From Trichosphaerium sp. ATCC 40318 (lineage: Eukaryota; Protista; Tubulinea): DNA of 64,000 nucleotides. Of the stretch, positions 1,249 to 52,439 are shown piece by piece; position 1 is the stretch's first letter, and the number at the start of each line of letters is the position of its first letter. Made by a program: the position numbers and the translations under genes. The notes under the pieces were generated by a model, which saw nothing but the letters and a program-made list of their open reading frames with translations, was not told where the DNA came from and did not search any database. The stretch lies in assembly GCA_038496445.1 (NCBI GenBank), contig JALMLS010000149.1, positions 186,001 through 250,000 of the forward strand, in the 5' to 3' direction.

Positions 1249-2369
1249 TCAGGTGTTAGTTGGCAGTTAAGAGAAAAGTCTGGTAGAAATGAAATAAAAT
1301 GGAAATTAGCGAAAAACTACCCAAATTTCTGTCTTTGGTAAACATACTGCTGACCATTTGAATAAACTAAAGGTCGCTGCTTCTTTATATTTACTTCGTT
1401 TGCGAGCCTTGTTACTTTTGCGGAGTGCTACTATACCAAAAGCATAGAACGTTGCAACACAAAAAAACCTCAGTTTGACAGGAACTTGTGGTTGCAGTGA
1501 ATATTTATTGAAAACGAACATAAAACTAGGAAAGTACTATGCTTAGATTGCACCCCAAGAAGCTTCCAAGTCAGGTTTTTTACCAGAAAATCCAAAGTTA
1601 GTTTAGGGAACAAAGTCTGGTGTAAAACACAACGTTTCTGCTTTAACATTGCTATGTAATGCAGGTTTCGTGCAGTCTGGGCTATGCGTTGAGGTCGCCT
1701 TGATAACATTCCTTCATATCCTTCAATTGTGCATCACATTGCCCGTGGCAGTACCAAAGCGACTTCTTTCCCATCATCAACGCACCCCAGCGGCTCGAGA
1801 ATTTCGGATTGTACAGCTATAGATAGCTATTCGGTTTCTACACGATTACGAGACAATATCAGTTAATTGGTAGTACCGCACCTTGCACAGGGAAGTAGTG
1901 TTTATAATTTTAGACATTCTTCGGTTGAAGAAAAGATGGCTTGAAACTAGAATAAAATGTAGCAGAATTTGCGAATACCCCTTTGTGCATTCGACTGTGA
2001 ATAGAGCAACACTTGACGCATTTCCGGAGGTAACGGTCAACACATCCAAAAAAAGAAAACTGCTAATGATGGATCACCACAACATCGAGAATTTGTTTCG
2101 AATTCACTTAGGTGATTAGCGGATAATTGCCAAACAATTAATCAATGCCAAAGAGTTCTACTGAAAAAAACCAAAGGCTTACTATAATTTTCCGTGCTTT
2201 GGCTTCCATATTATACTGCGCAGCTATTTTGCTTTTCCTTTATTTTTGTACAATTACAGACTTTTTTGTTTCTTAATTAGGAAACAATACAAAGCGTCGT
2301 TGTGCCCTGTAAAAAACAAACTACGCTTGTATATAACATAGAACGCATGCACTTGTTTTTTTATGACTG

Positions 2370-2464
2370 TTAAACTGATCTCGATTAAAATCACGTTTCG
2401 GCAACCGAAATACGCCTGAATAAGCCGGAAACGCTATGGTGTTGAATTGAGAACTATCTTCAAT
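2370..2464 (+). promoter_or_regulatory. Conserved non-coding element upstream of the pseudokinase ORF
   Basis: 94/95 nt identical to 51294-51388 while the flanks diverge. A 34-nt core is identical in all three copies. Confidence 0.6.
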
Positions 2465-2747
2465 AGATTTAACGTGCCGCTTGAGTAATTAGCAGACTTG
2501 TTTTTGTTTAGTTTTTTAGTTTTGTTTCTCCCTTTTTCCACAAGACTGAAAAAAACTAAAAATGCAATTCAACTGATGCGCAACAGTCTGTCACGCCACA
2601 TCAAAGGATATCAGTCTTCGCGATGGACTGGTTCGATATGTTTCTCCTACCACTCTACAATGTTAGTTATCGGCTTTAACTGCGCAGTATACGCGTGTAC
2701 GCCAATAATATCTAACTACTAATACCATCGCAACTCTTCCAAACAAA

Positions 2748-3269
2748 ATGCCAATCCTATCATTCCTCAAGAACAAGAAGACCCAACCGACCTCCCAAAG
2801 CCTCGAACAGATTGCGCGTAGAGGACTCAAACACAAAACAGTTCTGAAGGTGCTCAAATCGACGGTGATAGAGCTGGATGTCTTACATCAAGCAGGATAT
2901 GCTTACCAACGCATAAACGGACACAACATCAAAGTCCATCGCAAACAACACTGTTTGATGCTCACAGGTTCTCTCAGCAACAATGGCAACCCTCTAAACA
3001 GCTCTCTGGTACTTGAAATGCAACAAAAAAAGGATATTCACCAACTCGGCTGCTTGGCAACCTGGCTCACCATCGGAGGCGATTTTGAGCGCGTACAAAC
3101 ACTGGACAGGCACCAACAACTTCTTGCTTTGAAAGATGCTCGAGCTTCAGCGACACTCATTAACTTTGTATCTGCGTGCTTTGGTAAAACCACAACTGCG
3201 CGGTACCTTTTTTCCACACTAGAAACTGTACATGTAAAACAGTTAAAAATAAAAAATAGATTTATGTAG
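2748..3269 (+). CDS. Intronless kinase C-lobe-only pseudokinase-like protein, copy A (173 aa)
   Basis: [18 protein letters not shown] resembles subdomain VI (LH..GIVHRDIKPxNILV), [14 protein letters not shown] resembles subdomain IX, and [12 protein letters not shown] resembles XI. The ORF is intact in three paralogs. Confidence 0.75.
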
Positions 3270-3420
3270 ACAACTTTTGTTACTCGCTCGTTCTAAGATT
3301 TTGTTCAAAGTTCATCTTCTATGCCATGTCATTAAAAATGTGCGTCATTGCAATAGTTTCCTTGTTTGTATTTGATAACAGTACTCAGGCAACTTCAAAT
3401 AAGTTCTTTATGGGATTTAG

Positions 3421-3442
3421 TAGAAATTCCACAGAAATTTCG
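3421..3442 (+). promoter_or_regulatory. Imperfect heat-shock-element-like GAA/TTC array upstream of Hsp70
   Basis: TAGAAATTCCACAGAAATTTCG ~90-110 nt before the ATG, identical in the second Hsp70 copy (27350-27371). Only one perfectly spaced GAAnnTTC unit. Confidence 0.35.
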
Positions 3443-3529
3443 CTGATTTTCATACTTCACATAAAACAATCGCTTCAAGACAACACCATTATTTCAAAAA
3501 TCATTCAAACAACACAACAACGTACTAAA

Positions 3530-5425
3530 ATGAGTCAATCAACAAAAATAAGAGGACCATGCATCGGTATTGACCTTGGAACGACATATTCTTGCGTCGG
3601 TCACTACAACAACGGTAAAGTCGATATCATCGCCAACGACAACGGTAACAGAACAACTCCAAGTTATGTTTCGTTTGGAGATACAGAACGTCTTATTGGT
3701 GAAGCGGCAAAGAACCAAGCAGCAATGAATCCAACCAACACTGTTTTCGATGCAAAGAGATTGATTGGACGTAAATTCAACGACCAGTCAGTTCAGAGCG
3801 ATGCCAAACACTGGGCCTTTAAAATTATCAACAAAGACGGAAAGCCACACGTTCAAGTCACTTTCAAAAATGAACTCAAGACTTTCACACCAGAAGAAAT
3901 CAGCGCCATGGTACTTTCAAAGATGAAGCAAACAGCGGAGAACTACCTTGGACAGAAAGTCACAGATGCCGTTGTCACAGTCCCTGCCTATTTTAACGAC
4001 GCCCAGCGTAAGTCTACAAAAGATGCTGGTATCATTGCAGGACTCAATATCAGAAGAATTATCAACGAGCCTACAGCGGCAGCACTTGCTTATGGACTCG
4101 ACACAGCGAACAAGGGCGAGAGAAATGTTCTAGTATTCGATTTGGGCGGTGGTACTTTTGATGTCAGTCTTTTGACCCTCGATGAAGGTGTCACTGAGGT
4201 ACGCGCCACAGCTGGCAACACTCATTTGGGTGGAGAAGATTTTGACAACAGAGTCGTGGATCATTTCATCAAAGAGTTCAAACGCAAACACAACCTCGAT
4301 ATTTCCAACAACGACCGTGCTCTAAGACGTCTCCGTACAGCTTGTGAACGTGCAAAGAGGACTCTTTCAAACGCTACAATGGCATCTATCGAAATTGATG
4401 CTCTATATCAAGGCACAGACTTTTTCACAAAACTATCAAGAGCACGTTTTGAAGAGCTCAATATGGATCTTTTCAAGCAAACTCTTCAACCAGTTGAACA
4501 AGTTCTCAGAGATGCCAAGATGGACAAACATACTATTCACGAAATCATTCTGGTTGGTGGATCTACACGTATTCCAAGAATACAGAAGATGCTCTCTGAT
4601 TATTTCAATGGAAAGAAACTCAACAAATCCATCAATCCAGATGAAGCTGTTGCTTATGGTGCCGCTGTTCAAGCAGCGATCATTGCTGGGAAAAAAGATA
4701 AAATATTGGACGACATTGTACTCATCGATGTTGCTCCTTTGAGTATGGGATTGGAGACTGCAGGTGGTATCATGACGACTCTAATTCCAAGAAACACAAA
4801 GATTCCAACGACAAAAGAACAATATTTCTCGACAGCTGCTGATAATCAAACTGCAGTTACAATTCAAGTGTTTGAAGGAGAAAGGCGATTCACAAAAGAC
4901 AACAGAGCACTTGGCCAATTCAATTTGACGAATATTCCTCCAGCTCCTCGTGGTGTACCTAAGATAACGGTGGTATACGCTATAGACTCAAACGGTATCC
5001 TTACAGTGAGCGCCAAAGACGAAGCGAATGGTAACTCAAAGAGTATCGAGATTCAAGCGCAAACAGGCAATCTCACAAAAGAAGATATCGATCGAATGGT
5101 AGCAGAGTCTGAGAAATTCAAAGAAGATGACGAGAAAGCATTACAACGTGTTGAAGCAAAGAATAACTTGGAGAATTACGCCTTCCATGTGCGTTCTACA
5201 CTTGAAGAAAAGAATATGAAGGAGAAACTTGCGCCTGAGGAGTTATCAACACTTGAAGAACAAGTCATGGATTCAATTCGATTTACAGAAAACAACCCAA
5301 ATGAAAGTGCTGACACATACAATACAAGGCGTAGTCAACTTGAAGAGAAGGTCAACAAATTAATGGCAAAGATTCATCAGTCAGGAAGTCCACCAACACA
5401 ACCAAGTGTAGAAGAAGTTGAATAA
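3530..5425 (+). CDS. HSP70: Hsp70 chaperone, intronless, copy 1 (631 aa)
   Basis: [40 protein letters not shown]; C-terminus VEEVE. True start is probably MSQSTK at 3530 rather than the longer ORF start. Confidence 0.97.
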
Positions 5426-5590
5426 ATGTAATATATGAAATAATGTCTTGTTTTTTTTTGCACATAAATTTCACGTGATTTTTTTATGACTCCATTTGAC
5501 TTAGTAAACTACCCAAACTCAAGAAGCCTAAAATAAGCACAAAACTTCCTATTTAGTTAGCTACTGTTTGAGGACTGCAACGCGGGAACA

Positions 5591-6522
5591 ATGAGTCGCC
5601 TTGGTGCTTGTGTAGTAGATTTTGACAAAACTATAACAAAACATGACACATCGCGTGTTTTAATGAATTGCGGTATATGGCTTGCTTTTAAAACGAAAAC
5701 TTACACTATTAGTTGTCAAAACACGCCCAGACGTTAAAGATGAATGGGTAGCGTTTGAGAAGGCGTACTATCAGTCATATAAAACATATCATGCTCAAAT
5801 AGACAAACACCCGTCATTTGACGCTTTTATTGCAGCTATGGACGAGTTTGAGCTCAAGTGGATTAAAAGTACGCAATATGAGCATAACTACCTTTGCTCT
5901 AACTCTTCCAGAGATTGTAGATAAAGATTTTCTCAAAGGAGCAAGGTTGACAGATATTGAAAATGCTGCCAAAGATATAGAGACGCGCGAGCATGCCCTA
6001 GAAACCCTCAAATGGCTTCATGAGAATAACGTACCTGTGGTGGTGCTAAGCTTGTGCTGGAGTAAGTCAATGATTGCTTCTGTATTCAAAAACCAAGGTG
6101 GATTTTCAGGTACAAAATTAATACGTTTCTTTCCTTTTCTTGACATATTTTTAGTGCGGCTTGTCACGAATTCTTTAACGATGAAAGATGGTGTATCTAC
6201 AGGAGAGATTGAGGGTCATGTCCATACAGCTCAATCAAAGTTAGATATCATAAAGGAACTGCGTGCCGAGTACGCAAAGAAGGGTCAAAAAGTAGCGTAC
6301 ATTGGAGATTCAGCATGGGACGTTCCAGCGCTACTACACGCTGATATACCGCTTGTTGTTGGCAAGTCTCAATCACTAGCAGAAGTCTGCGAGAAATTCA
6401 ATATTAAGAGATACAAACCTGACACTTGGAATGATTCTTGTAGTAACGACGAAAAACGAGTTGTTAATATGCCTTCATGGCAAGCAATAAGAGAGTTATT
6501 GTCAAAAGACGTTAAGGCATAA
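5591..6522 (+). CDS. HAD-superfamily phosphatase (TH2/thiamine-phosphate-phosphatase-like HAD domain)
   Basis: N-terminal VVDFDKTIT (DxDxT), LSLCWS motif II, YIGDSAWD motif IV; three short GT-AG introns. Confidence 0.8.
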
Positions 6523-21093: not shown

Positions 21094-23464
21094 ATGCCTT
21101 CTATTGCTTTGCAAGTATTCGAACTGGTTATAGTGGTATGCTTGTTTCAAATCGGAGTTGCCATTAATAATACACCACAAGACTTTAAAATAGGTATGTA
21201 CAAATGATATCTTAAAAGGGGTTAATTCTTTTACTTTTTATAGGTATTTTAAATTTCAGGGGCGCGGAGGTAGCACACAATCAATGGAATGCAACAGCTA
21301 AGTATATCCAAGATCATTCTGTTGAGTTTTTTGGAGTTCAACATACATTTTCCACAATCGCTTTAACTTTGGCAGAAATCGATATCGCTGTAGCAGAAGA
21401 ATCTGTAGACTTTGTTATAACGACCCCTAGCCAGTATGTTCTACTTGAGGTAAAAGACACGTGATACATGAACTATTTTTAGATGTAGAAAAAAACTAAT
21501 TTCGATTTTTCGAAAATAGGTCAAATTCGCTATCTATCGTATTGCCACCCTTGTGAATCTCCGTCAGAACCACCGTCTGACGAAGTTTGGTGGTGTAATA
21601 TTTTCCATGAAGGAGAGTAATATATCAACCTTGCAAGATATCGAAAAGGCGAAAATACATGCATCTAGTCCAGTAGGATTTGGCGCCTATCTTATGCAAA
21701 TTGGTTACCTCGATGACATGGGCGTTGATACATCCAAGCTGAATATTTCCTTTCTATTCAATCAGAATAAAATAGTATCGAATATATTGGATGGTGTAGC
21801 AGACGTTGGGTTTGTACGAACTGATCAGCTTGAGAGATTTGTTGCAGCGAACCCAGAATACGAAGAGAAATACAAAAGAGTTTCAATATTTAAACCGGTT
21901 TCATCGTCTGCTTTCCCTTTCCCTCATACGACAGAATTATACCCTGAGTGGCCATTTTCTTTGACATCTTCTGTAGAGACTAGGATAGACGTAAGGTACA
22001 ACTTTTTTTAAATCACGTGACGTCAAACCCTTAAAAGACTGACCAAACTTTTGTTTTCAGGCGTATGATTACTTTACTTTTCTCAATTCCTTCAAATTCG
22101 ACGGCTGCGATTAAAGGACAATATGATCGTTGGACGTATCCGCTTAACTACATAAGTATATTTACGCTGTTGAGTAAATTTGACTTCTTTGATGACGAAT
22201 ACGAGACATGCCTAAAAAAATGCAATGCTGGCACGTGTGAAGAAATAAATAACTCTACACTTTGTAACTGCGATGTCGGATGGCAAGGAGAATTTTGTGA
22301 AATAATTAGTCCAAAAATTGAGGTGCGTCATTGCTAATACAGTCTGTTTTCTTTGAGCCATTTTGCTCGTATGTTTTTTGTTTGCTTTGACCTTACACTG
22401 ATACTTAGACCTGGGTGACTTTTGATGATTACGGAACATACGTTGTTGTTATATTATGTGCCATTGAGATTCTGTTAATATTAGTTCTAATGACACATAT
22501 TGTTATACACAGAAATTCAAAAAGAATCAAAAAAACAGGATTTTGGTTCACCACTTTATCACTTATCGGTTACTTATTGATGCTCTTTTCTATTTTTCTA
22601 TGGGTTGGTAAACCTTACGATATAACCTGCTCGCTCAGGGTTTGGTTGGCAGATATTGGATTTACCTTGGTACGTAGAAACCAAAACATGTTTTCATTTT
22701 CTGCAATTTTCGAAAAAAACAATTAAATTGTATCTCACAACGTGTTTTAGGCTTTTGTCGGACCAGTGGTGAAAATGGTGAGGTTGTCAATTTTGTATAG
22801 AAGTGAATTATTCACTATTAATGATATCACACTGGCCAAAATTGTTGTTGTAGTAATTTTCTTTAAACTCTGTTTTTTAGCTTGTTGGCAAATTGTAGCA
22901 CCTTCTGTTGTCTCAAAGGTGCAAGTTAAAACAAGGTACCTAATATATATATATACGTTATTTTCTTTAACATAGAATCATTTAGTTTTGACACAGTCGA
23001 TGCTGTATGCAAATTCAATATCTTCTTTGGAGCAATTGCTATATTTGTTAAGATATTCTTCATGATTATATTCGGCTGGCTCACATTTGCTATTCATAAG
23101 ACTAACATACACCACGACTTAAAAGAACAAAAATACATCAATTTATCTGTATACAACTCTATGGTAATAAGTACGAATAGCTCAAAATGGAAGCAAAGAT
23201 TTCATTCTTCTTTTTTTCTTTTTTTTGATGTTTCTTTTAGTTGTTCTCTGCTCTAGCCTTTATTTGGCTATATCAGATAAGAGATATTATCAAGAGTTCT
23301 ACATATTCACATGTGGTTATCTCATTCTTACAGCTTCTGCCATTTTACCGCTACTACCAACGCTTCTTGGGTATGTTCACACAACTGACCGCACAGTTAC
23401 TGTCAACGAAGCTATTCCTCCACCTTCTTCAAGAGATCCTGATGAGACCATCTCAAGACTATAG
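21094..23464 (+). CDS. Receptor-like protein: PhnD/TtrS-like solute-binding domain + EGF-like module + class C GPCR-like TM region
   Basis: Signal peptide; IGILNFRG..QWNAT, VDFVITTPSQYVLLE, FGGVIF, ADVGFVRTDQLE, TTELYPEWPF; CNCDVGWQGEFC; HRNSKRIKK..CSLRVWLADIGFTL..KMVRL..E.KYINLSVYN (7tm_3-like). Confidence 0.8.
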
Positions 23465-24502: not shown

Positions 24503-25366
24503 AGTTGTAAGCAAATAAAACCTTCTCAGAATAAAGTATAATTGTTTAATTCGCAAATAGCATTTCTCGCCATTCACTCAAAGGAACGTAACATCTGTCT
24601 ACAATGGGTGTATTGTAAATGTGGCTCATTTACATAGCACTTTAGGAATGGACGAGTGTGTTACTTTCTACCTAAGGTCTTTTTTTTCAATTTAATTCTC
24701 GAAACCAGAGGTTTACTTAAGTATGTGCAACTGTTATTCGTTTTACTACCTTTATGAGACATAAGTAAGGTACGAACGAGTAAACCAGTTTGAATGAAAT
24801 TATTTCTGTTCTACTTTGTAGGTATTGAAAGGAATTACTTCCTGCGTATTTGGTTTCGCATCAGTACGATGCATCTAAGAACAAAAACAAAACCAATATT
24901 TATTTGCCCTGCTTTTGTTATGTATAAATAATCTATCGTCCTAGTTCAACTACAACCGTTTTATTAATCTTATACTTTATGCTTTGATAACGGCTCCTGG
25001 GATGTCATTATAATTTTACTGTGAAGGTGGCCTGGCGAAGTTGCTGGAGTGATGAGAGGGCTACCTCCAAGAATTAAAAGCCTGGCATTTTAAAGCCTAC
25101 TTAAGTAGCAAAGCATTTTTTGTGTTATGAACTTCTAGCCACAGGATATGAATATAACCGTACAATTTCAACGCCAACAAAGTTGAATCCAAGAACTGCA
25201 CTTAGTAAATAAATGTTTAAAGGCATACAACGACCTGGTGTCGTGAAGCTTTGTGAACAATCTTTAAAAGTGTAAAATTTAATGTAATTAAAACGCGCTA
25301 TATGCGAAATAACAAAAGGGTTATACTAGCAAAAAAAAACCAAGACATGAAATAATTATACTACAT

Positions 25367-27262
25367 TTATTCAACTTCTTCTACACTTGGTTGTGTTGGT
25401 GGACTTCCTGACTGATGAATCTTTGCCATTAATTTGTTGACCTTCTCTTCAAGTTGACTACGCCTTGTATTGTATGTGTCAGCACTTTCGTTTGGGTTGT
25501 TTTCTGTAAATCGAATTGAATCCATGACTTCTTCTTCAAGTGTTGATAACTCCTCAGGCGCAAGTTTCTCCTTGATATTCTTTTCTTCAAGTGTAGAACG
25601 CACACGGAAGGCGTAATTCTCCAAGTTATTCTTTGCTTCAACACGTTGTAGTGCTTTCTCGTCATCTTCTTTAAATTTCTCAGACTCTGCTACCATTCGA
25701 TCAATATCTTCTTTTGTGAGATTGCCTGTTTGCGCTTGAATCTCGATACTCTTAGAATTACCATTTGCTTCGTCTTTGGCGCTTACTGTAAGGATACCGT
25801 TTGAGTCTATAGCGTATACCACCGTTATCTTAGGTACACCACGAGGAGCTGGAGGAATATTCGTCAAATTAAATTGGCCAAGTGCTCTGTTGTCTTTTGT
25901 GAATCGCCTTTCTCCTTCAAACACTTGAATTGTAACTGCAGTTTGATTATCAGCAGCTGTCGAGAAATATTGTTCTTTTGTCGTTGGAATCTTTGTGTTT
26001 CTTGGAATTAGAGTTGTCATGATACCACCTGCAGTCTCCAATCCCATACTCAAAGGAGCAACATCGATGAGTACAATGTCGTCCAATATTTTATCTTTTT
26101 TGCCAGCAATGATCGCAGCTTGAACAGCGGCACCATAAGCAACAGCTTCATCTGGATTGATGGATTTGTTGAGTTTCTTTCCATTGAAATAATCAGAGAG
26201 CATCTTCTGTATTCTTGGAATACGTGTAGATCCACCAACCAGAATGATTTCGTGAATAGTGTGTTTGTCCATCTTTGCATCTCTGAGAACTTGTTCAACT
26301 GGTTGAAGAGTTTGCTTGAAAAGATCCATATTGAGCTCTTCAAAACGTGCTCTTGAAAGTTTTGTGAAAAAGTCTGTGCCTTGATATAGAGCATCAATTT
26401 CAATAGATGCCATTGTAGCGTTTGAAAGTGTTCTCTTTGCGCGTTCACAAGCTGTACGGAGACGTCTTAGGGCACGGTCGTTGTTTGAAATATTGAGGTT
26501 GTGTTTGCGTTTGAACTCTTTGATGAAATGATCCACGACTCTGTTGTCAAAATCTTCGCCACCCAAATGAGTGTTGCCAGCTGTGGCGCGTACCTCAGTG
26601 ACACCTTCATCGAGGGTCAAAAGACTGACATCAAAAGTACCACCGCCCAAATCAAATACTAGAACATTTCTCTCGCCCTTGTTCGCTGTGTCTAGTCCAT
26701 AAGCAAGTGCTGCCGCTGTAGGTTCGTTGATAATTCTTCGGATATTGAGCCCTGCAATGATACCAGCGTCTTTTGTAGACTTACGCTGGGCGTCGTTAAA
26801 ATAGGCAGGGACTGTGACAACGGCATCTGTGACTTTTTGTCCAAGGTAGTTCTCCGCTGTTTGCTTCATCTTTGAAAGTACCATGGCGCTGATTTCTTCT
26901 GGTGTGAAAGTCTTGAGTTGATTTTTGAAAGTGACTTGAACATGTGGCTTTCCGTCTTTGTTGATAACTTTAAAGGCCCAGTGTTTGGCATCGCTCTGAA
27001 CTGACTGGTCGTTGAATTTGCGCCCAATCAATCTCTTTGCATCGAAAACAGTGTTGGTTGGATTCATTGCTGCTTGGTTCTTTGCCGCTTCACCAATAAG
27101 ACGTTCTGTATCTCCAAACGAAACATAACTCGGTGTTGTTCTGTTACCGTTGTCATTGGCAATGATATCGACTTTACCGTTGTTGTAGTGACCGACGCAA
27201 GAATATGTCGTTCCAAGGTCAATACCGATGCATGGTCCTTTTATTTTTGTTGATTGACTCAT
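25367..27262 (-). CDS. HSP70: Hsp70 chaperone, intronless, copy 2 (631 aa)
   Basis: Near-identical to 3530-5425 (7 aa differences by comparison of the translations), same VEEVE terminus. ~150 nt of 5' flank is shared. Confidence 0.97.
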
Positions 27263-27794
27263 TTTAGTACGTTGTTGTGTTGTTTGAATGATTTTTGAAA
27301 TAATGGTGTTGTCTTGAAGCGATTGTTTTATGTGAAGTATGAAAATCAACGAAATTTCTGTGGAATTTCTACTAAATCCCATAAAGAACTTATTGAAAGT
27401 TGCCACAGTACTGTTTTAGATCTGCCTTGGGCTCATTGATGCACCTGGGTAGTGTAGTTTTACACTCCGCCAGTAGCAAGAGTTACTGGGCTTTTAGGTT
27501 AGTAGTTGAAGATGAACGGCGCACGTTAAGAGTTTAACCTCTTTGTTCCGTTGAGTTACTTCTTCAACAGCGAACCTTGCAAACGGCAAAGGGCTGGTTT
27601 TAAAACCAGTCAAACAATAAAGAAAACAAATCCGGGATTCATTCGGGCTTGCAACTCAGAACCTGTATGCTGCCTCCAAACAAAGTGTTCTCAACATTGA
27701 ATAATAGCAGTTCTTTAGTGTTTATTGCGTAAACAAGCTATGCATTACTGGGTAAATCATTTATTATTAACTAAAACAGAAATACAACCTTCCG

Positions 27795-33819: not shown

Positions 33820-36711
33820 TTACTGAAAATCGCCAAAAGGATCATCTTCTTCTCTGGCATCTACCTCCTCCTTCAATAATTCAATCTCCTTTCTAGATAG
33901 TTCATATATCTTTGTAGACTCCTAAAACAATACAATTAATAAACTATACCATAGTAGAAGATAAACACAAAACGGAGCAAAGAAAAAACTAGGTTTAGCG
34001 ATGGCGACAGGATTCGAACCTGCGAGCCCAAGGGCACTTGATTTCTAATCAAGCTGCTTTAACCAGCTGGCTACACCATCTTGCATTTGTTTAAACAGCT
34101 AGACGGACGAGATCCGCCACACAGCAAACAGAGTGCAACAACAACGCATAAAATAAAGAACCAAAACAAACAAACAAAAAAAAAAGAGAAAAAAACAAGA
34201 TACGTACTGGTTCAAATCTGAAAGGTATTTTACCAAGGTCACCCGAAAACCTATTTTTAAGAATATCAAGGTATCTGTAATATTTTCCTTTTTGAATAAT
34301 CATAACATTATCAGCTTCCTGTGTAGCTTTTGCTGTACCAAAAATTGAACTCATTTGTAATGCAGTTTTATCATCCTCTTTACGTGGATGTATAATCAAA
34401 GTAACATGTACTTTATTCTTTGTAGCAAAAGCACGGAAAGTCTCAATAGCTTCATCCATTAAATCAAACTTTGAGATACCTCGTCGCTAAACAAACCATC
34501 AGCAACGCAAACAACGAAAAAACAAAAAAAAAAAAAAAAAAAGCAATAATGTCTCATCAAATAATTTCTTTAACGAACCTGTCCTGATGTCATAAACTGT
34601 AGATTATCAATAATAACATGCTCAACATCATGAGCATAGACTGCATAGTCCATAGCATCAATAACACTATCAACATTTGTTGATCCAAAAAATCTCATCC
34701 AATATATAGGTAAGTTATTAAACTCATCAGCAACATCATCAAACTCGTCTAGATAAGCTTCAAGATCTTTAACAGCAAATTGATATAACATTTTCTTAAT
34801 CAATCGGACATTACTAATCTCAAAACTTCCCCATAAAGTTCGCACATTTTGTTGTGCAAGATCAAGACTTATTTGCGATACAATCTACATCATGACAGTT
34901 AATTTACAAGGAATAATAAGAACAAGCTGTATTCAAGAACGTACAGATGTTTTACCTACACCTGTAGGACCTGTAAGAACAGTTAATTCTCCTTTTCTAT
35001 GACCTTTGAGAATCAAGTTGAGAGAAGGAAGTGCTTTAAATTGAACACCAGCCACTAGGTCTCTAGTTAGCACAAATGCGATACACGACTGATCATATGA
35101 AGTATATCATAGTATAGCGTACCTTGAAGTGGATTAGAGAGTTCGTTCTTAATTTCTGAGCGAAGTTCGTTAAAAGTTGTAATTTCTTTATGAGGAATAA
35201 TTTGAGCGGCTTTAAGCATTTCATTTAAATCTTTTCCCTCTCTTATCGCGTCATTAGCATCTTTAGGTCCTGATACATCACCCATCTTAGTATGAACCAA
35301 GAATACTCTTTCTCGACCCAACTTCTGTGCAAACTTTTGTCCACCTTCTTGTCCTTTGTGATCGTCGTCCATCCACAAGTAAATCTTTTCAAACTTTTCC
35401 AACATTTCAATAACACTTGCTGGTAATGATCCAGCACCATTAGGCAATGATACAGCTGGTTTACCAGTAGCTTGATATACAGCCATAGCATCGAATTCGC
35501 CTTCTGTAATAATAATTTCGGTAGCATCTGTTGGCACTAGATGCCAACCAAACAATCCCATAGCACCTCCTACATACAATCAATAAGCGTGAAAAAAGCA
35601 AAAAGTTATTTTTATGTACCAGCAGGATCAAGACGTTGATGGGCTTTATTTTCTATTGATCTCACTTTAAGACGTATTAATCTACTCTTTACAATCCAAG
35701 GAAATGTTACACATGGCATTTGCTTTGCTAGGAGTACGTAAATACGAGTCTATGTGAAAATGATGGTTTTAAGGCTTCAAAAAAACCGAACATAAAAAAC
35801 CGTACCAATAAGCGATCCATCAGTGTCTACCCATCTGAAAGTATATACTGCAGCACCAACCTTGTATGCAGCAAGTGTTTCTTCAGTTAATGCTCTTTTT
35901 TCGAGTAAGTACTGCTTGATACTAACAGCGTATTCTTTCTCAGCATTATTTAAGTTTGCAACAGATAATTGAAGTTTCTCTTCGTTAGGTAATACTGCAG
36001 CATCCTCTGGCTTTCCTTCTGGAAGAGAACGAGCAGCAGATGGTAACAAAGCTTTTTGTAAATCAAACCTAAAAAATAATGTCAAACAACGCATGCATGC
36101 ATGACACAAAGAAAGAGAGAAAATAAACGAAAAAAAAAAAGAAGGTTGACAAATAAATTTCACATTTTGACACTTACCATGATCCCTTAGCTTGACAACG
36201 CTGACAAAAGTATGTACCACTCTGTCTTTGTACATATAGCTTCCATTGGTTATCATGGCGATCCTTAGTATCGTGACAGAAGGGACAATGGAGCAATACA
36301 ATTTCCTACATCTTTTTTAGTTTAATTTCGTATTTCGTGCGTTTTTGTTGGTTTCTCTGTCCCCCACGCGCTTACCTTTCCATCGCTACCCACTTTATCC
36401 TTGTGTATGACATTATGCTTTTTTAAAAAAGAAGGAATCTTTTCTGGGTCGTCTGTGCGGTAGTGCGATGATACAAATGTATCAGAAGTGGCGTTGTTTC
36501 GATATTTTTTTGAGGCGCCGCTGTGTTGCTGAAAATGCCTCAAAGCATTACGTGGTACATATTTATGCGTTAAACAAGCGCTATGGTCGTGCTGGCATTT
36601 AGTTGGTTTTGTAAACGTTTTGTACTCCCTACGCAGTTGTGTACGCGCTCGTGCCTGCGTATGTACGGTATTGAGGACTGAAAAACTTGTATTCAAACGA
36701 AGGAAAGCCAT
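33820..36711 (-). CDS. TWNK: Twinkle-type mitochondrial primase-helicase
   Basis: Zn finger [24 protein letters not shown] / LWMDDD / KDAND, helicase [46 protein letters not shown]; N-terminal mitochondrial-targeting-like sequence. Confidence 0.93.
33999..34080 (-). tRNA. tRNA-Ser (anticodon AGA), within the last intron of Twinkle
   Basis: 82-nt cloverleaf: acceptor GATGGTG/CGCCATC + G73, anticodon arm CTTGA-TTAGAAA-TCAAG, long variable arm GCCC-TT-GGGC, T-loop TTCGAAT. A T6 Pol III terminator follows at 33983-33988. Confidence 0.95.
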
Positions 36712-49541: not shown

Positions 49542-49905
49542 TCAGTTAATTGGTAGTTGGAGACTGTATCATTTTTTACATACAGGTTGTTCGGTTGAGT
49601 TGCAGTGAATAGTTGAGAAAAGATGGATTTATTAGTATGGAAAAACTGGCTGCTATTTTTTGACTTCGAATAAATTACATTACAGCAGAATTTGAGAATA
49701 CCCTTTGTGTATTCGATTGTACATCGAATATCATTGCGCGCAATTCCGGAGGTAACGGTCAATACATTCAAACAAAAGAAAGTGCAAGTGATCCAACACC
49801 ACAATTAAAAATTCCTTCCAAGAATTTTGTTTAGAATCATCTAAGGTATTTTTATCAGCCCAAGAGTTCTACTGAAAAAATCATAGGCAACAAATAATTT
49901 TCCGT
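49542..49905 (+). repeat. Distal upstream block of the cassette (homolog of ~1859-2195)
   Basis: Colinear matches TCAGTTAATTGGTAGT, AGCAGAATTTG.GAATACCC, TTCCGGAGGTAACGGTCAA, AAGAGTTCTACTGAAAAAA, ATAATTTTCCGT. Confidence 0.85.
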
Positions 49906-49997
49906 ACCAATTCAATTATAACGTAAAGATTGAAAGAACTTATTGAAGTGATGCAAAAAAACTATTCTTCCACAAAGTTGTTTACATTAATTTGTTT

Positions 49998-50501
49998 TTA
50001 TTTTATCTTTTTTACATGTACAGTTTCGAGTGCGCTAGAAAGGGTTCGCGTAGTTGTGGATTCGTTAAAGCACGCAGATACAAAGTTGAGGAGTGTGGTT
50101 GATGCTCGAGTTTTTTTCAAAGCAAGAAGTTGTTGGTGCCTGTCCAGTGTTTTTACGCAATCAAATTCGCCTCCAAGGGTGAGCCAGGTAGCCAAGCATC
50201 CGAGTTGGTGAATATCGCTTCTTTGTTGCTCTTCAAGTCCCAGAGGGCTGTAGCCAGTGTTCTTGTCGTCGTTGAGCGAACCAGTGAGCATTAGGCAGTG
50301 TTCTTTTCGGTGGACTTTTATGTTTTGTCCATCAATGTGCGTGTAAGCATATCCTGCTTGATGTAACGCGCCAAGCTGTATCACCGTAGCTTTTAGAACC
50401 ATGAGAACTGTTTTATGCTTTAATCCTTTACGCGCAAATTGCTCGAGGGTTTGGGAGGTAGGTTGTTTCGTCTTGTTGTTGAGGGATGATCGGATAGGCA
50501 T
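49998..50501 (-). CDS. Kinase C-lobe-only pseudokinase-like protein, copy B (167 aa, more diverged)
   Basis: Paralog of 2748-3269: [41 protein letters not shown]; intact ORF. Confidence 0.75.
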   Translation of the reverse strand: MPIRSSLNNKTKQPTSQTLEQFARKGLKHKTVLMVLKATVIQLGALHQAGYAYTHIDGQNIKVHRKEHCLMLTGSLNDDKNTGYSPLGLEEQQRSDIHQLGCLATWLTLGGEFDCVKTLDRHQQLLALKKTRASTTLLNFVSACFNESTTTRTLSSALETVHVKKIK

Positions 50502-51691
50502 TTTGAGTAGAAGAGTTGCGTGTTGTGTTTGTTGTAGATATTATTGGTGCGTACGCATATACTGCGCAGTTTGCAGGCCGATAATGTAGAGTACTCGGAG
50601 AAACATTGTAACGCACTGAACAAATCCTTTTGAAGACATATGTCCTTGGTGGTTGGCGTAACAGCGTGGTTAGAATCGAATTGATTTGCATTTTTAGTTT
50701 GTTTCCATCTTTGGGGAAAAAGGGAGAAACAAAGTCTGGGCAATATTTTACGAACCGTTACTCACTCAACAAACACTTAGATACGTTGAATAGGGTTCTT
50801 AATTCAACGTCACAGCGTTTCCGGCTTATTCAGGCGTATTTCGGTTGAGGAAACGTGATTTAACCGAGATCGGTTTCAGGGTTATGAAACAACAAGTTCA
50901 TGCCTTCTACGCTATATAATAGCGTCGTAGTGTTTTGTGAAAGGTACAATAGTGCTTTGTACCTATTACTGTCTGCAAAATGTACTAAAAAAAGGAATGT
51001 AGAAAGCTGCACAGTAAAATGTTTGCCTGGCTCTGGTTTTCTCCGCAGAATGCTTTGGTAATGATAATGCGTAATGCCATTATCCAGGTTAGATAGTGGT
51101 CGTGAATAATGTTGGGAATTCCCGAACGTTGGTCGATTGTGGTTAACATTTGCAATTTTTTACAATCTTTTTTTTGTACAATTACAGACTATTTGTTAAC
51201 TAAAATAGGACGATATAAAGCGATGTACCCTTTAAAAATCCCTACTACGCTAACATATGGCATAGAACGCATGAATTTCTTTTGTTATCACCATTAAACT
51301 GATCTCGATTAAAATCACGTTTCGGCAACCGAAATACGCCTGAATAAGCCGGAAACGCTATGGCGTTGAATTGAGAACTATCTTCAATTGATTTAACATG
51401 TCGCTTGGGCAGTTAGCGTATTACTTCGTAAGTACTATGGACTTTGTTTTGTTGACTTTTGGGTTTTAGTTCTCCTCTTTTCTCCAGACTGAAAAAAACT
51501 AAAAGTGCAATTCAGTTGATTCTTAACATGCTGTCACACCAACATCAAAGGCTATCAGTCATTACGATGGTATGGTTCGATATGTTTCTCCGAATACTCT
51601 ACAATGTTAGTTATCGGCTTTAACTGCGCAGTATACGCGTGTACGCCAATAATATCTAACTACTAATACCATCGCAACTCTTCCAAACAAA

Positions 51692-52216
51692 ATGCCAATC
51701 CTATCATTCCTCAAGAACAAGAAGAACCAACAACCGACCTCCCAAAGCCTCGAACAGATTGCACGTAGAGGACTCAAACACAAAACAGTTCTGAAGGTGC
51801 TCAAATCGACGGTGATAGAACTGGATGTCCTACATCAAGCAGGATATGCTTACCAACGCATAAACGGACACAACATCAAAGTCCATCGCAAACAACACTG
51901 TTTGATGCTCACAGGTTCTCTCAGCAACAATGGCAACCCTCTAAACAGCTCTCTGGTACTTGAAATGCAACAAAAAAAGGATATTCACCAACTCGGATGC
52001 TTGGCAACCTGGCTCACCATCGGAGGCGATTTTGAGAACGTACAAACACTGGACAGGCACCAACAACTTCTTGCTTTGAAAGATGCTCGAGCTTCGGCGA
52101 CACTCATTAACTTTGTATCTGCGTGCTTTGGTAAAACCACAACTACGCGGTACCTTTTTTCCACACTAGAAACTGTACATGTAAAACAGTTAAAAATAAA
52201 AAACAGATTTATGTAG
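51692..52216 (+). CDS. Kinase C-lobe-only pseudokinase-like protein, copy C (174 aa)
   Basis: Nearly identical to copy A (one codon insertion, a few substitutions). Confidence 0.75.
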   Translation: MPILSFLKNKKNQQPTSQSLEQIARRGLKHKTVLKVLKSTVIELDVLHQAGYAYQRINGHNIKVHRKQHCLMLTGSLSNNGNPLNSSLVLEMQQKKDIHQLGCLATWLTIGGDFENVQTLDRHQQLLALKDARASATLINFVSACFGKTTTTRYLFSTLETVHVKQLKIKNRFM

Positions 52217-52439
52217 ACAACTTTTGTTACGAGTTCTAAGATTTCGCTTTACAAGTTTCTACCGAGTTTTGACGCTAGATTCACGCGCGACGCTACTCAA
52301 TTTCACGAGTAGAGGCAAACTAGTGCTTGATAGAAAAAGAGACCATTGCTCAATATTAATCTGCTCAAATATATTACGGCAGAGACTTGCCTAAGGCGGG
52401 CTACAATAATTTACAAAAAGAGGGCGCCAAAAAATTCAT

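Follow-up and report, generated by a model that had tools for sequence, protein, structure and literature searches.

Three intronless genes of Trichosphaerium sp. ATCC 40318 encode a putative stand-alone derivative of the protein kinase C-lobe

Results and discussion

Three copies of a repeated unit among ordinary nuclear genes

The window analysed here, a stretch of 64,000 nucleotides of Trichosphaerium sp. ATCC 40318 DNA (contig JALMLS010000149.1, positions 186,001 to 250,000), contains three intact, intronless ORFs that belong to one family. They lie where an earlier reading, made from the sequence alone (the sequence-only reading), had placed them: ORF A from 2748 to 3269 on the forward strand, ORF B from 49998 to 50501 on the reverse strand and ORF C from 51692 to 52216 on the forward strand. 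The predicted products are 173, 167 and 174 amino acids long, respectively, ORF C having one extra codon compared to ORF A, and the protein identity is 98% between A and C and 71% between A and B.

Self-comparison of the window showed that the repeated unit, at approximately 1 kb, is larger than the ORF, as the three copies also share about 500 nt of non-coding DNA upstream. Unit A, which comprises this upstream sequence and ORF A, extends from 2240 to 3301 on the forward strand and is matched by self-BLAST to 51168-52244 (89.5% identity) and to 50961-49974 (76%). The first of these matches is unit C (51168-52244, forward strand), delimited by self-BLAST and alignment, and the second is the diverged unit B (49974-50961, reverse strand), which is arranged head-to-head with unit C. 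The start codons of ORFs B and C are 1190 nt apart and both ORFs are located 45 kb from copy A. A diverged short repeat was also detected between 1961-2200, upstream of unit A, and 49684-49930, on the 3' flank of unit B, which is inverted, with about 79% identity over 122 nt and a second patch of similarity. A mobile element was considered as the source of the copies and rejected, as the units do not end in terminal inverted repeats and the flank repeat is consistent with a segmental duplication. Together with the inverted B/C pair, the flank repeat thus points to segmental duplication (with inversion) and not to transposition.

The neighbouring genes of the window are ordinary nuclear genes and include those for an actin-related protein, an F-box/LRR protein, a Twinkle-like Toprim protein, a GH16 protein, a helicase, Rpc25 and a tRNA-Ser. 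The actin-family and Toprim matches are split over neighbouring ORFs, in agreement with the earlier description of this genome as intron-rich. The tRNA-Ser (AGA), from 33998 to 34080 on the reverse strand, is the sole Rfam or ARAGORN match in the window. An intronless Hsp70 gene is present in two inverted copies, from 3377 to 5461 on the forward strand and from 25329 to 27415 on the reverse strand, with 97.4% identity. The Hsp70 product ends with EEVE and shares no more than 68% identity with any Hsp70 of the large protein set, animals and fungi mixed. The gene of a HAD-family hydrolase (5803-6519, forward strand), which adjoins Hsp70, had no homolog at E ≤ 1e-5 among 5.8 billion protein clusters, underlining that the host lineage is divergent or unsampled. 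An ORF from 21520 to 22008 on the forward strand matched the Pfam family Phosphonate-bd (E 7e-14), of the periplasmic binding protein type, which is unusual for a eukaryotic nuclear context.

Kinase-like motifs and their degeneration

The sequence-only reading had described the three ORFs as kinase-like from about helix D/E, through a degenerate catalytic loop (YQRINGHN or YTHIDGQN) and MLTGS in place of DFG, to subdomain IX (DIHQLGCL) and an end resembling subdomain XI. All the motifs that it quoted were found in the quoted order in the three ORFs, and its alignment register is the same as that of the global profile alignment described below. In ORF A, residues 1 to 16 form an N-terminal extension, residues 17 to 110 align with the kinase region from helix D to helix F, and residues 111 to 173 are collinear with helices G to I and subdomain XI. 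The equivalent of the end of helix E and the degenerate catalytic loop were located at 2883-2927 (forward strand) by the HMMER and hhalign alignments. At the position of the catalytic loop (HRDxKxxN), both the Asp and the Lys are replaced, differently in A/C and in B, and the final Asn is kept. DFG is absent from ORFs A, B and C, and in comparison with the bacterial kinases used below, the activation segment is shorter by approximately 18 to 20 residues.

The conservation between the copies is unevenly distributed over these motifs. The catalytic-loop remnant is the most variable of them, 4 of its 8 positions being different between A/C and B. The equivalents of the end of helix E, of strands 7 and 8, of helix F and of the helix G region are invariant across the copies. 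The subdomain IX (helix F) equivalent, for instance, at 3033-3053 of the forward strand in ORF A, is identical in all of them, and so is a stretch of twelve residues assigned to the helix G region by global alignment (3099-3134, forward strand), which we infer to be a candidate docking surface.

Profile comparison with the kinase C-lobe

No kinase gene that could be used as comparator was found in the 64-kb window by Pfam searches of the ORFs, by motif scan or by six-frame profile screening, and bacterial comparators were therefore fetched, using a DNA pattern for HRDxKxxN followed by DFG. This pattern yielded 120 loci from environmental bacteria, three loci from pathogen-containing genera being left out, and 115 Hanks-type kinase domains were cut from them and used to build full-domain, N-lobe and C-lobe profiles.

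When the alignment of the three copies was compared to the 115 kinase C-lobes using hhalign, a match of 94 columns was obtained with a probability of 86.7% and a score of 40.4, in which residues 17 to 110 of the ORF are aligned with the region from helix D through helix F. The scores of the controls were far lower. One hundred column shuffles gave a mean of 12.6 (sd 2.3) and a maximum of 22.8, the reversed query scored 18.0 (probability 1.5%), the Hsp70 family used as target scored 11.9, and 90 other natural segments of the window used as queries gave a mean of 12.1 and a maximum of 21.6, the three ORFs occupying ranks 1 to 3. Against the kinase N-lobe the score was 9.2 and the probability 0.09%. 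The match was reproduced over the same columns when the kinase set was split into two disjoint halves (72.8% and 83.0%). Of the single copies, B alone reached 84%, and A or C alone 21 to 22%. Overall, the probabilities for C-lobe homology range from 73 to 87% and the scores from 35 to 40, with null maxima of 18 to 23. In the global alignment the whole ORF is collinear with the C-lobe, residue 1 being placed at the hinge, with helices G to I and the conserved Arg of subdomain XI matched by the C-terminal part.

HMMER searches run with all filters switched off (--max) gave 9 to 10 bits for the ORFs against the C-lobe profile, which is above 1000 of 1000 shuffles of the same sequences, and the ORFs were the top three of the 2741 six-frame segments of the window. 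These scores are nevertheless lower than the noise matches of the ORFs to unrelated NCBIfam models (13 to 15 bits), so that HMMER alone is undecisive and the case rests on hhalign. As judged from the latter, the family is collinear with the kinase C-lobe, as had been claimed, and with nothing else, at 73-87% and far above the shuffled, reversed, unrelated-family and natural controls. The query profile contains only three sequences, effectively two, and the kinase hypothesis had been picked by the sequence-only reading from these very motifs, which makes the test not fully independent. Because of this thin profile and post hoc choice, we regard a true kinase ancestry of the ORF family as probable and go no further than that.

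Structure prediction and database searches

AlphaFold models based on the three sequences only had pLDDT values of 36.3 and 36.7 (two models) and were unusable. A Foldseek search with the first of these low-pLDDT models returned no match at E ≤ 0.001, and the TM-scores did not exceed 0.28, which is the noise level; some viral PDB entries are among these chance-level rows, and none of them was used as evidence. In the low-confidence models (pLDDT 36-37), two predicted helices are followed by a beta hairpin, a loop and then five more helices, an order compatible with that of a C-lobe.

The ORFs matched no Pfam family at E ≤ 10, including the Pkinase and PK_Tyr_Ser-Thr profiles. Nothing was found in the PDB by sequence, and only chance matches to FtsI by profile (E 0.3-1). 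The NCBIfam matches were at noise level (10 to 15 bits, compared to cut-offs of 100 or more), and nothing meaningful was found in PHROGs. No relative of the ORFs was detected by a word-indexed search of 5.8 billion protein clusters or by a metagenome DNA scan, and exact look-ups in public protein sets showed that neither ORF A nor Hsp70 is on record there. An exhaustive HMMER search of 1.84 billion representatives, which was run without length filter and thus covered longer kin and fusions too, gave a single match, P0001 (E 4e-22 against the family profile). This predicted protein of 698 amino acids was rejected as a relative, since it is a translated tandem repeat of 51 residues and its score adds up from 14 weak matches, all to one short segment of the query. 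It illustrates how tandem repeats inflate the whole-sequence scores of HMMER.

No kinase, KIND, PK2 or eIF2-alpha kinase entry was returned from Pfam, the PDB or the large protein searches. Of the features of the protein kinase superfamily, the ORFs have the collinearity with the C-lobe and lack the N-lobe, the catalytic loop and the DFG motif. By the profiles or solved chains of these groups, the ORF family is no detectable member of the Pkinase, KIND or PK2 group. The blank searches are weak evidence of novelty, because the host lineage is barely represented in the databases.

These results bear on the alternative that the ORFs encode a lineage-specific orphan helical protein of non-kinase ancestry, the kinase likeness being a false positive of a thin profile. 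Such an orphan would agree with the lack of kinase matches in Pfam, the PDB and the large protein searches, with HMMER kinase scores below those to unrelated NCBIfam models, with the uninformative structure models and with the strong divergence of the host lineage, as seen from the 68% ceiling on Hsp70 identity and from the HAD neighbour without homolog. It is difficult to reconcile, however, with a hhalign score of 40.4 far outside four types of null (maxima 22.8, 18.0, 11.9 and 21.6), with the reproduction of the match by disjoint kinase subsets, and with the position of the match, which covers the best-conserved motifs of the C-lobe, correctly ordered and spaced, and is extended collinearly to subdomain XI. 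We therefore consider an orphan protein unlikely, although it is the strongest competitor of a kinase origin.

Coding status and selection

Comparison of A and B gave a dS of 0.41, a dN of 0.175 and a dN/dS ratio of 0.42; the ratio is 0.38 for C and B, and 0.19 for A and C. dN is significantly lower than dS (Fisher p = 2e-4 and 5e-5). The coding nucleotides of A and B differ at approximately 19% of the positions without a stop codon and without a single indel in the 501 aligned nucleotides, whereas 12 indel events are found in the adjoining 448 nt upstream, 11 of which are not multiples of three. All copies have in common the ATG, an A at position -3 and an in-frame TAA at position -42, with no AG dinucleotide between this TAA and the ATG, hence no acceptor by which an upstream coding exon could be spliced in before the start. 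An open upstream frame was sought in every copy, and the three frames were all found to be filled with stop codons. The intact frames, the lower dN, the lack of indels in the coding sequence, the conserved start and the closed upstream region together identify the ORFs as real and complete single-exon coding sequences. ORFs A, B and C are thus real coding genes under moderate purifying selection. That the diverged copy is under selection had been suggested from its kept motifs, and the dN/dS of about 0.4, a check that had been proposed along with this suggestion, agrees with it, as do the intact frames and the indel-free coding sequences.

The same data speak to the possibility that the ORFs are decaying, non-functional leftovers from partial kinase gene duplications comprising the 3' part. 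Segmental duplication and inversion have evidently affected the region (two copies of Hsp70, the inverted B/C pair, the flank repeat), the catalytic motifs are degenerate and no product is recorded in the public protein sets, all of which could be expected of such leftovers. Decay would, however, hardly have left three intact frames at a dS of about 0.4, with 0 indels in the coding sequence against 12 upstream, a dN significantly below dS, and a conserved ATG, start context and upstream stop; moreover, a parent kinase was not detectable, either in the 1.84 billion representatives or in the six-frame screen of the window. Leftovers of this kind are therefore improbable.

ORFs A and C are 98% identical in their coding part, and only 85% identical upstream (2471-2747 in unit A). 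This suggests either gene conversion, with a tract that would be limited to the coding part, or a stronger constraint on the coding sequence.

The Hsp70 neighbourhood

ORF A was reported to lie 260 nt upstream of Hsp70, and the spacing is right: the stop codon of ORF A ends at 3269 and the methionine that opens the Pfam HSP70 match is at 3530. The stress-response module that had been deduced from this spacing did not hold. Copy A alone adjoins Hsp70; the second Hsp70 (reverse strand) has no neighbour from the ORF family in the window. Canonical heat-shock elements are not enriched, 22 being found in the window for 24.8 expected, and copies A and B and both Hsp70 genes have none upstream. The lone heat-shock-like site near the family (51119-51131) has one mismatch, is at chance level and separates unit B from unit C, approximately 570 nt upstream of the ATG of copy C. 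A viral derivation, which had also been envisaged, found no more favour, as the neighbours are cellular and viral matches were absent from the protein searches and from PHROGs.

A module co-regulated with Hsp70, or an origin from a virus, would make sense of the short distance between the end of copy A and the Hsp70 start on the same strand, and of intronless ORFs within an intron-rich genome. Two of the three copies are nevertheless not beside Hsp70, the second Hsp70 is unpartnered, the heat-shock elements do not exceed expectation, and each copy has a conserved upstream region of its own; the absence of viral matches and the cellular neighbours argue against the viral variant. Either version is very improbable.

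Upstream regions and the missing N-lobe

Within the upstream part of the repeated unit, a conserved non-coding block of about 130 nt was identified at 2340-2470 of the forward strand in unit A, 50779-50908 of the reverse strand in unit B and 51264-51394 of the forward strand in unit C. Its identity (82% between A and B, 93% between A and C) is as high as that of the coding sequence, but it has stop codons in all frames and a 1-nt indel, and it contains a CGG-N3-CCG palindrome. A non-coding RNA was considered for this block and rejected, as no Rfam match and no covariation were found. Just before the block, the alignment shows a TATA-like element at 2331-2338 (forward strand) in unit A, with equivalents mapped by alignment at 51255-51262 in unit C and at 50917-50910 in unit B, to which a promoter role may be attributed. 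The block is probably a core promoter or a first 5'UTR exon. It is followed in unit A by a GT...polypyrimidine-AG stretch, from about 2479 to 2541, which was read by eye as a putative intron. Since each copy has its own upstream region of approximately 500 nt with a conserved block, each of them is probably expressed from a promoter of its own rather than jointly with Hsp70.

The Gly-loop, VAIK and helix C, and an upstream exon that could supply them, had been described as missing, and they are indeed absent: the upstream frames are closed, the TAA at -42 is followed by no AG, and no N-lobe-like segment was found near any copy when the 2741 six-frame segments of the window were screened by profile. 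In particular, the sequence up to 17 kb from copy A and the interval that separates B from C contain none. The best-scoring segment of the window, 23 residues that resemble a Gly-loop and are encoded antisense to the GH16 gene, 17 kb from A, was rejected as noise. An intron-rich genome, some 500 nt of conserved upstream sequence and a possible intron at about 2479-2541 could have suggested that the ORFs are the last exons of full-length kinase genes with N-lobe exons upstream, but with closed upstream frames, no AG between the TAA at -42 and the ATG, upstream indels that are mostly out of frame, and no N-lobe segment within 17 kb of A or in the 1190 nt between the start codons of B and C, this is hardly credible.

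A putative binding protein derived from half a kinase fold

The explanation that accounts best for these observations, and to which we give moderate preference on the basis of the sequence features above, is a small gene family whose product would be a stand-alone, non-catalytic derivative of the kinase fold, consisting of the C-lobe only and acting by binding. Its predicted layout would be a 16-residue N-terminal extension followed by the hinge and the helices from D to I, the activation segment being shortened. As there is no N-lobe, no catalytic Asp or Lys and no DFG motif, ATP binding and phosphate transfer in the manner of a kinase are impossible, and the product would act purely through binding. 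Its most likely mode of action would be regulation in trans through mimicry of a cognate kinase's C-lobe. The product might capture the N-lobe of that kinase, as does baculovirus PK2, or engage those partners whose docking site is the helix G face, similar to the binding of a short peptide motif by KIND. The drift of the catalytic-loop remnant, while the stretches of helices E, F and G remained invariant, fits such a structural and docking role.

The proposed functions are less certain than the binding protein itself. By analogy with known systems, a decoy or inhibitor role in a kinase pathway, taken in general, is a tentative proposal with somewhat less than an even chance. A PK2-like cellular inhibitor that would act in trans on a kinase, as a multi-copy C-lobe mimic, through lobe capture or through competition for docking partners, appears as a more doubtful special case. 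If the PK2-like reading is true, lobe mimicry would be a normal regulatory device of cells, beyond a viral trick.

Comparison with known systems

Kinase-derived proteins that consist of the C-lobe only are rare, the documented cases being the viral inhibitor PK2 and the KIND domain inside large animal and holozoan proteins. If the proposed interpretation is correct, the present genes, as free-standing C-lobes under selection and in several copies among cellular genes, would represent a third route by which half of the kinase fold is reused, and they would offer a natural system in which to examine whether lobe mimicry serves cells in the control of kinases. The ORF family is invisible to Pfam, PDB and billion-sequence searches, so that the number of similar half-kinases in divergent eukaryotes may be underestimated.

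Classical pseudokinases have degraded catalytic motifs (HRDxKxxN, DFG) and keep the fold for scaffolding or allostery (PMC7586955). The ORF family shares such degraded motifs with Tribbles, STRAD and IRAK3. Whereas these proteins have a full bilobal domain, the entire N-lobe is missing from the ORF family and the activation segment is shorter. No class of free-standing cellular C-lobe-only proteins turned up when the pseudokinase literature was searched.

KIND is a cellular, non-catalytic domain made of the C-lobe alone, which serves as a protein-protein interaction surface and binds a short formin motif (PMC11231147, PMC2064798). The ORF family resembles it in being cellular, non-catalytic and restricted to the C-lobe. 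KIND is, however, one domain within multidomain proteins (SPIRE, PTPN13, very-KIND), whereas the ORF is the whole product, with 167 to 174 amino acids. The ORFs also differ from KIND in giving no match to the Pfam KIND family or to the solved SPIRE KIND chains at E ≤ 10, and in having no WH2, FERM or RasGEF context.

PK2 consists of a 22-residue N-terminal extension and a C-lobe mimic of 193 residues, and captures subdomains III-IV of the N-lobe of an eIF2-alpha kinase (bioRxiv 10.1101/2025.02.05.636571). Like PK2, the ORF product is small and stand-alone and has a short extension followed by a C-lobe (16 + 157 residues in ORF A, compared to 22 + 193 in PK2). As both are devoid of the ATP-binding lobe, any function must go through binding. 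Unlike the viral PK2, the ORF family is located among cellular genes and has no detectable parent kinase, and the likeness is one to the published layout of PK2, no match to PK2 or to an eIF2-alpha kinase having been obtained in Pfam, PDB or large protein searches. In its layout, a stand-alone product of 173 amino acids with a 16-residue extension and a C-lobe, the family is closest to PK2, and a docking module of the KIND type would also be in keeping with its occurrence among cellular genes and with the invariance of the helix G stretch.
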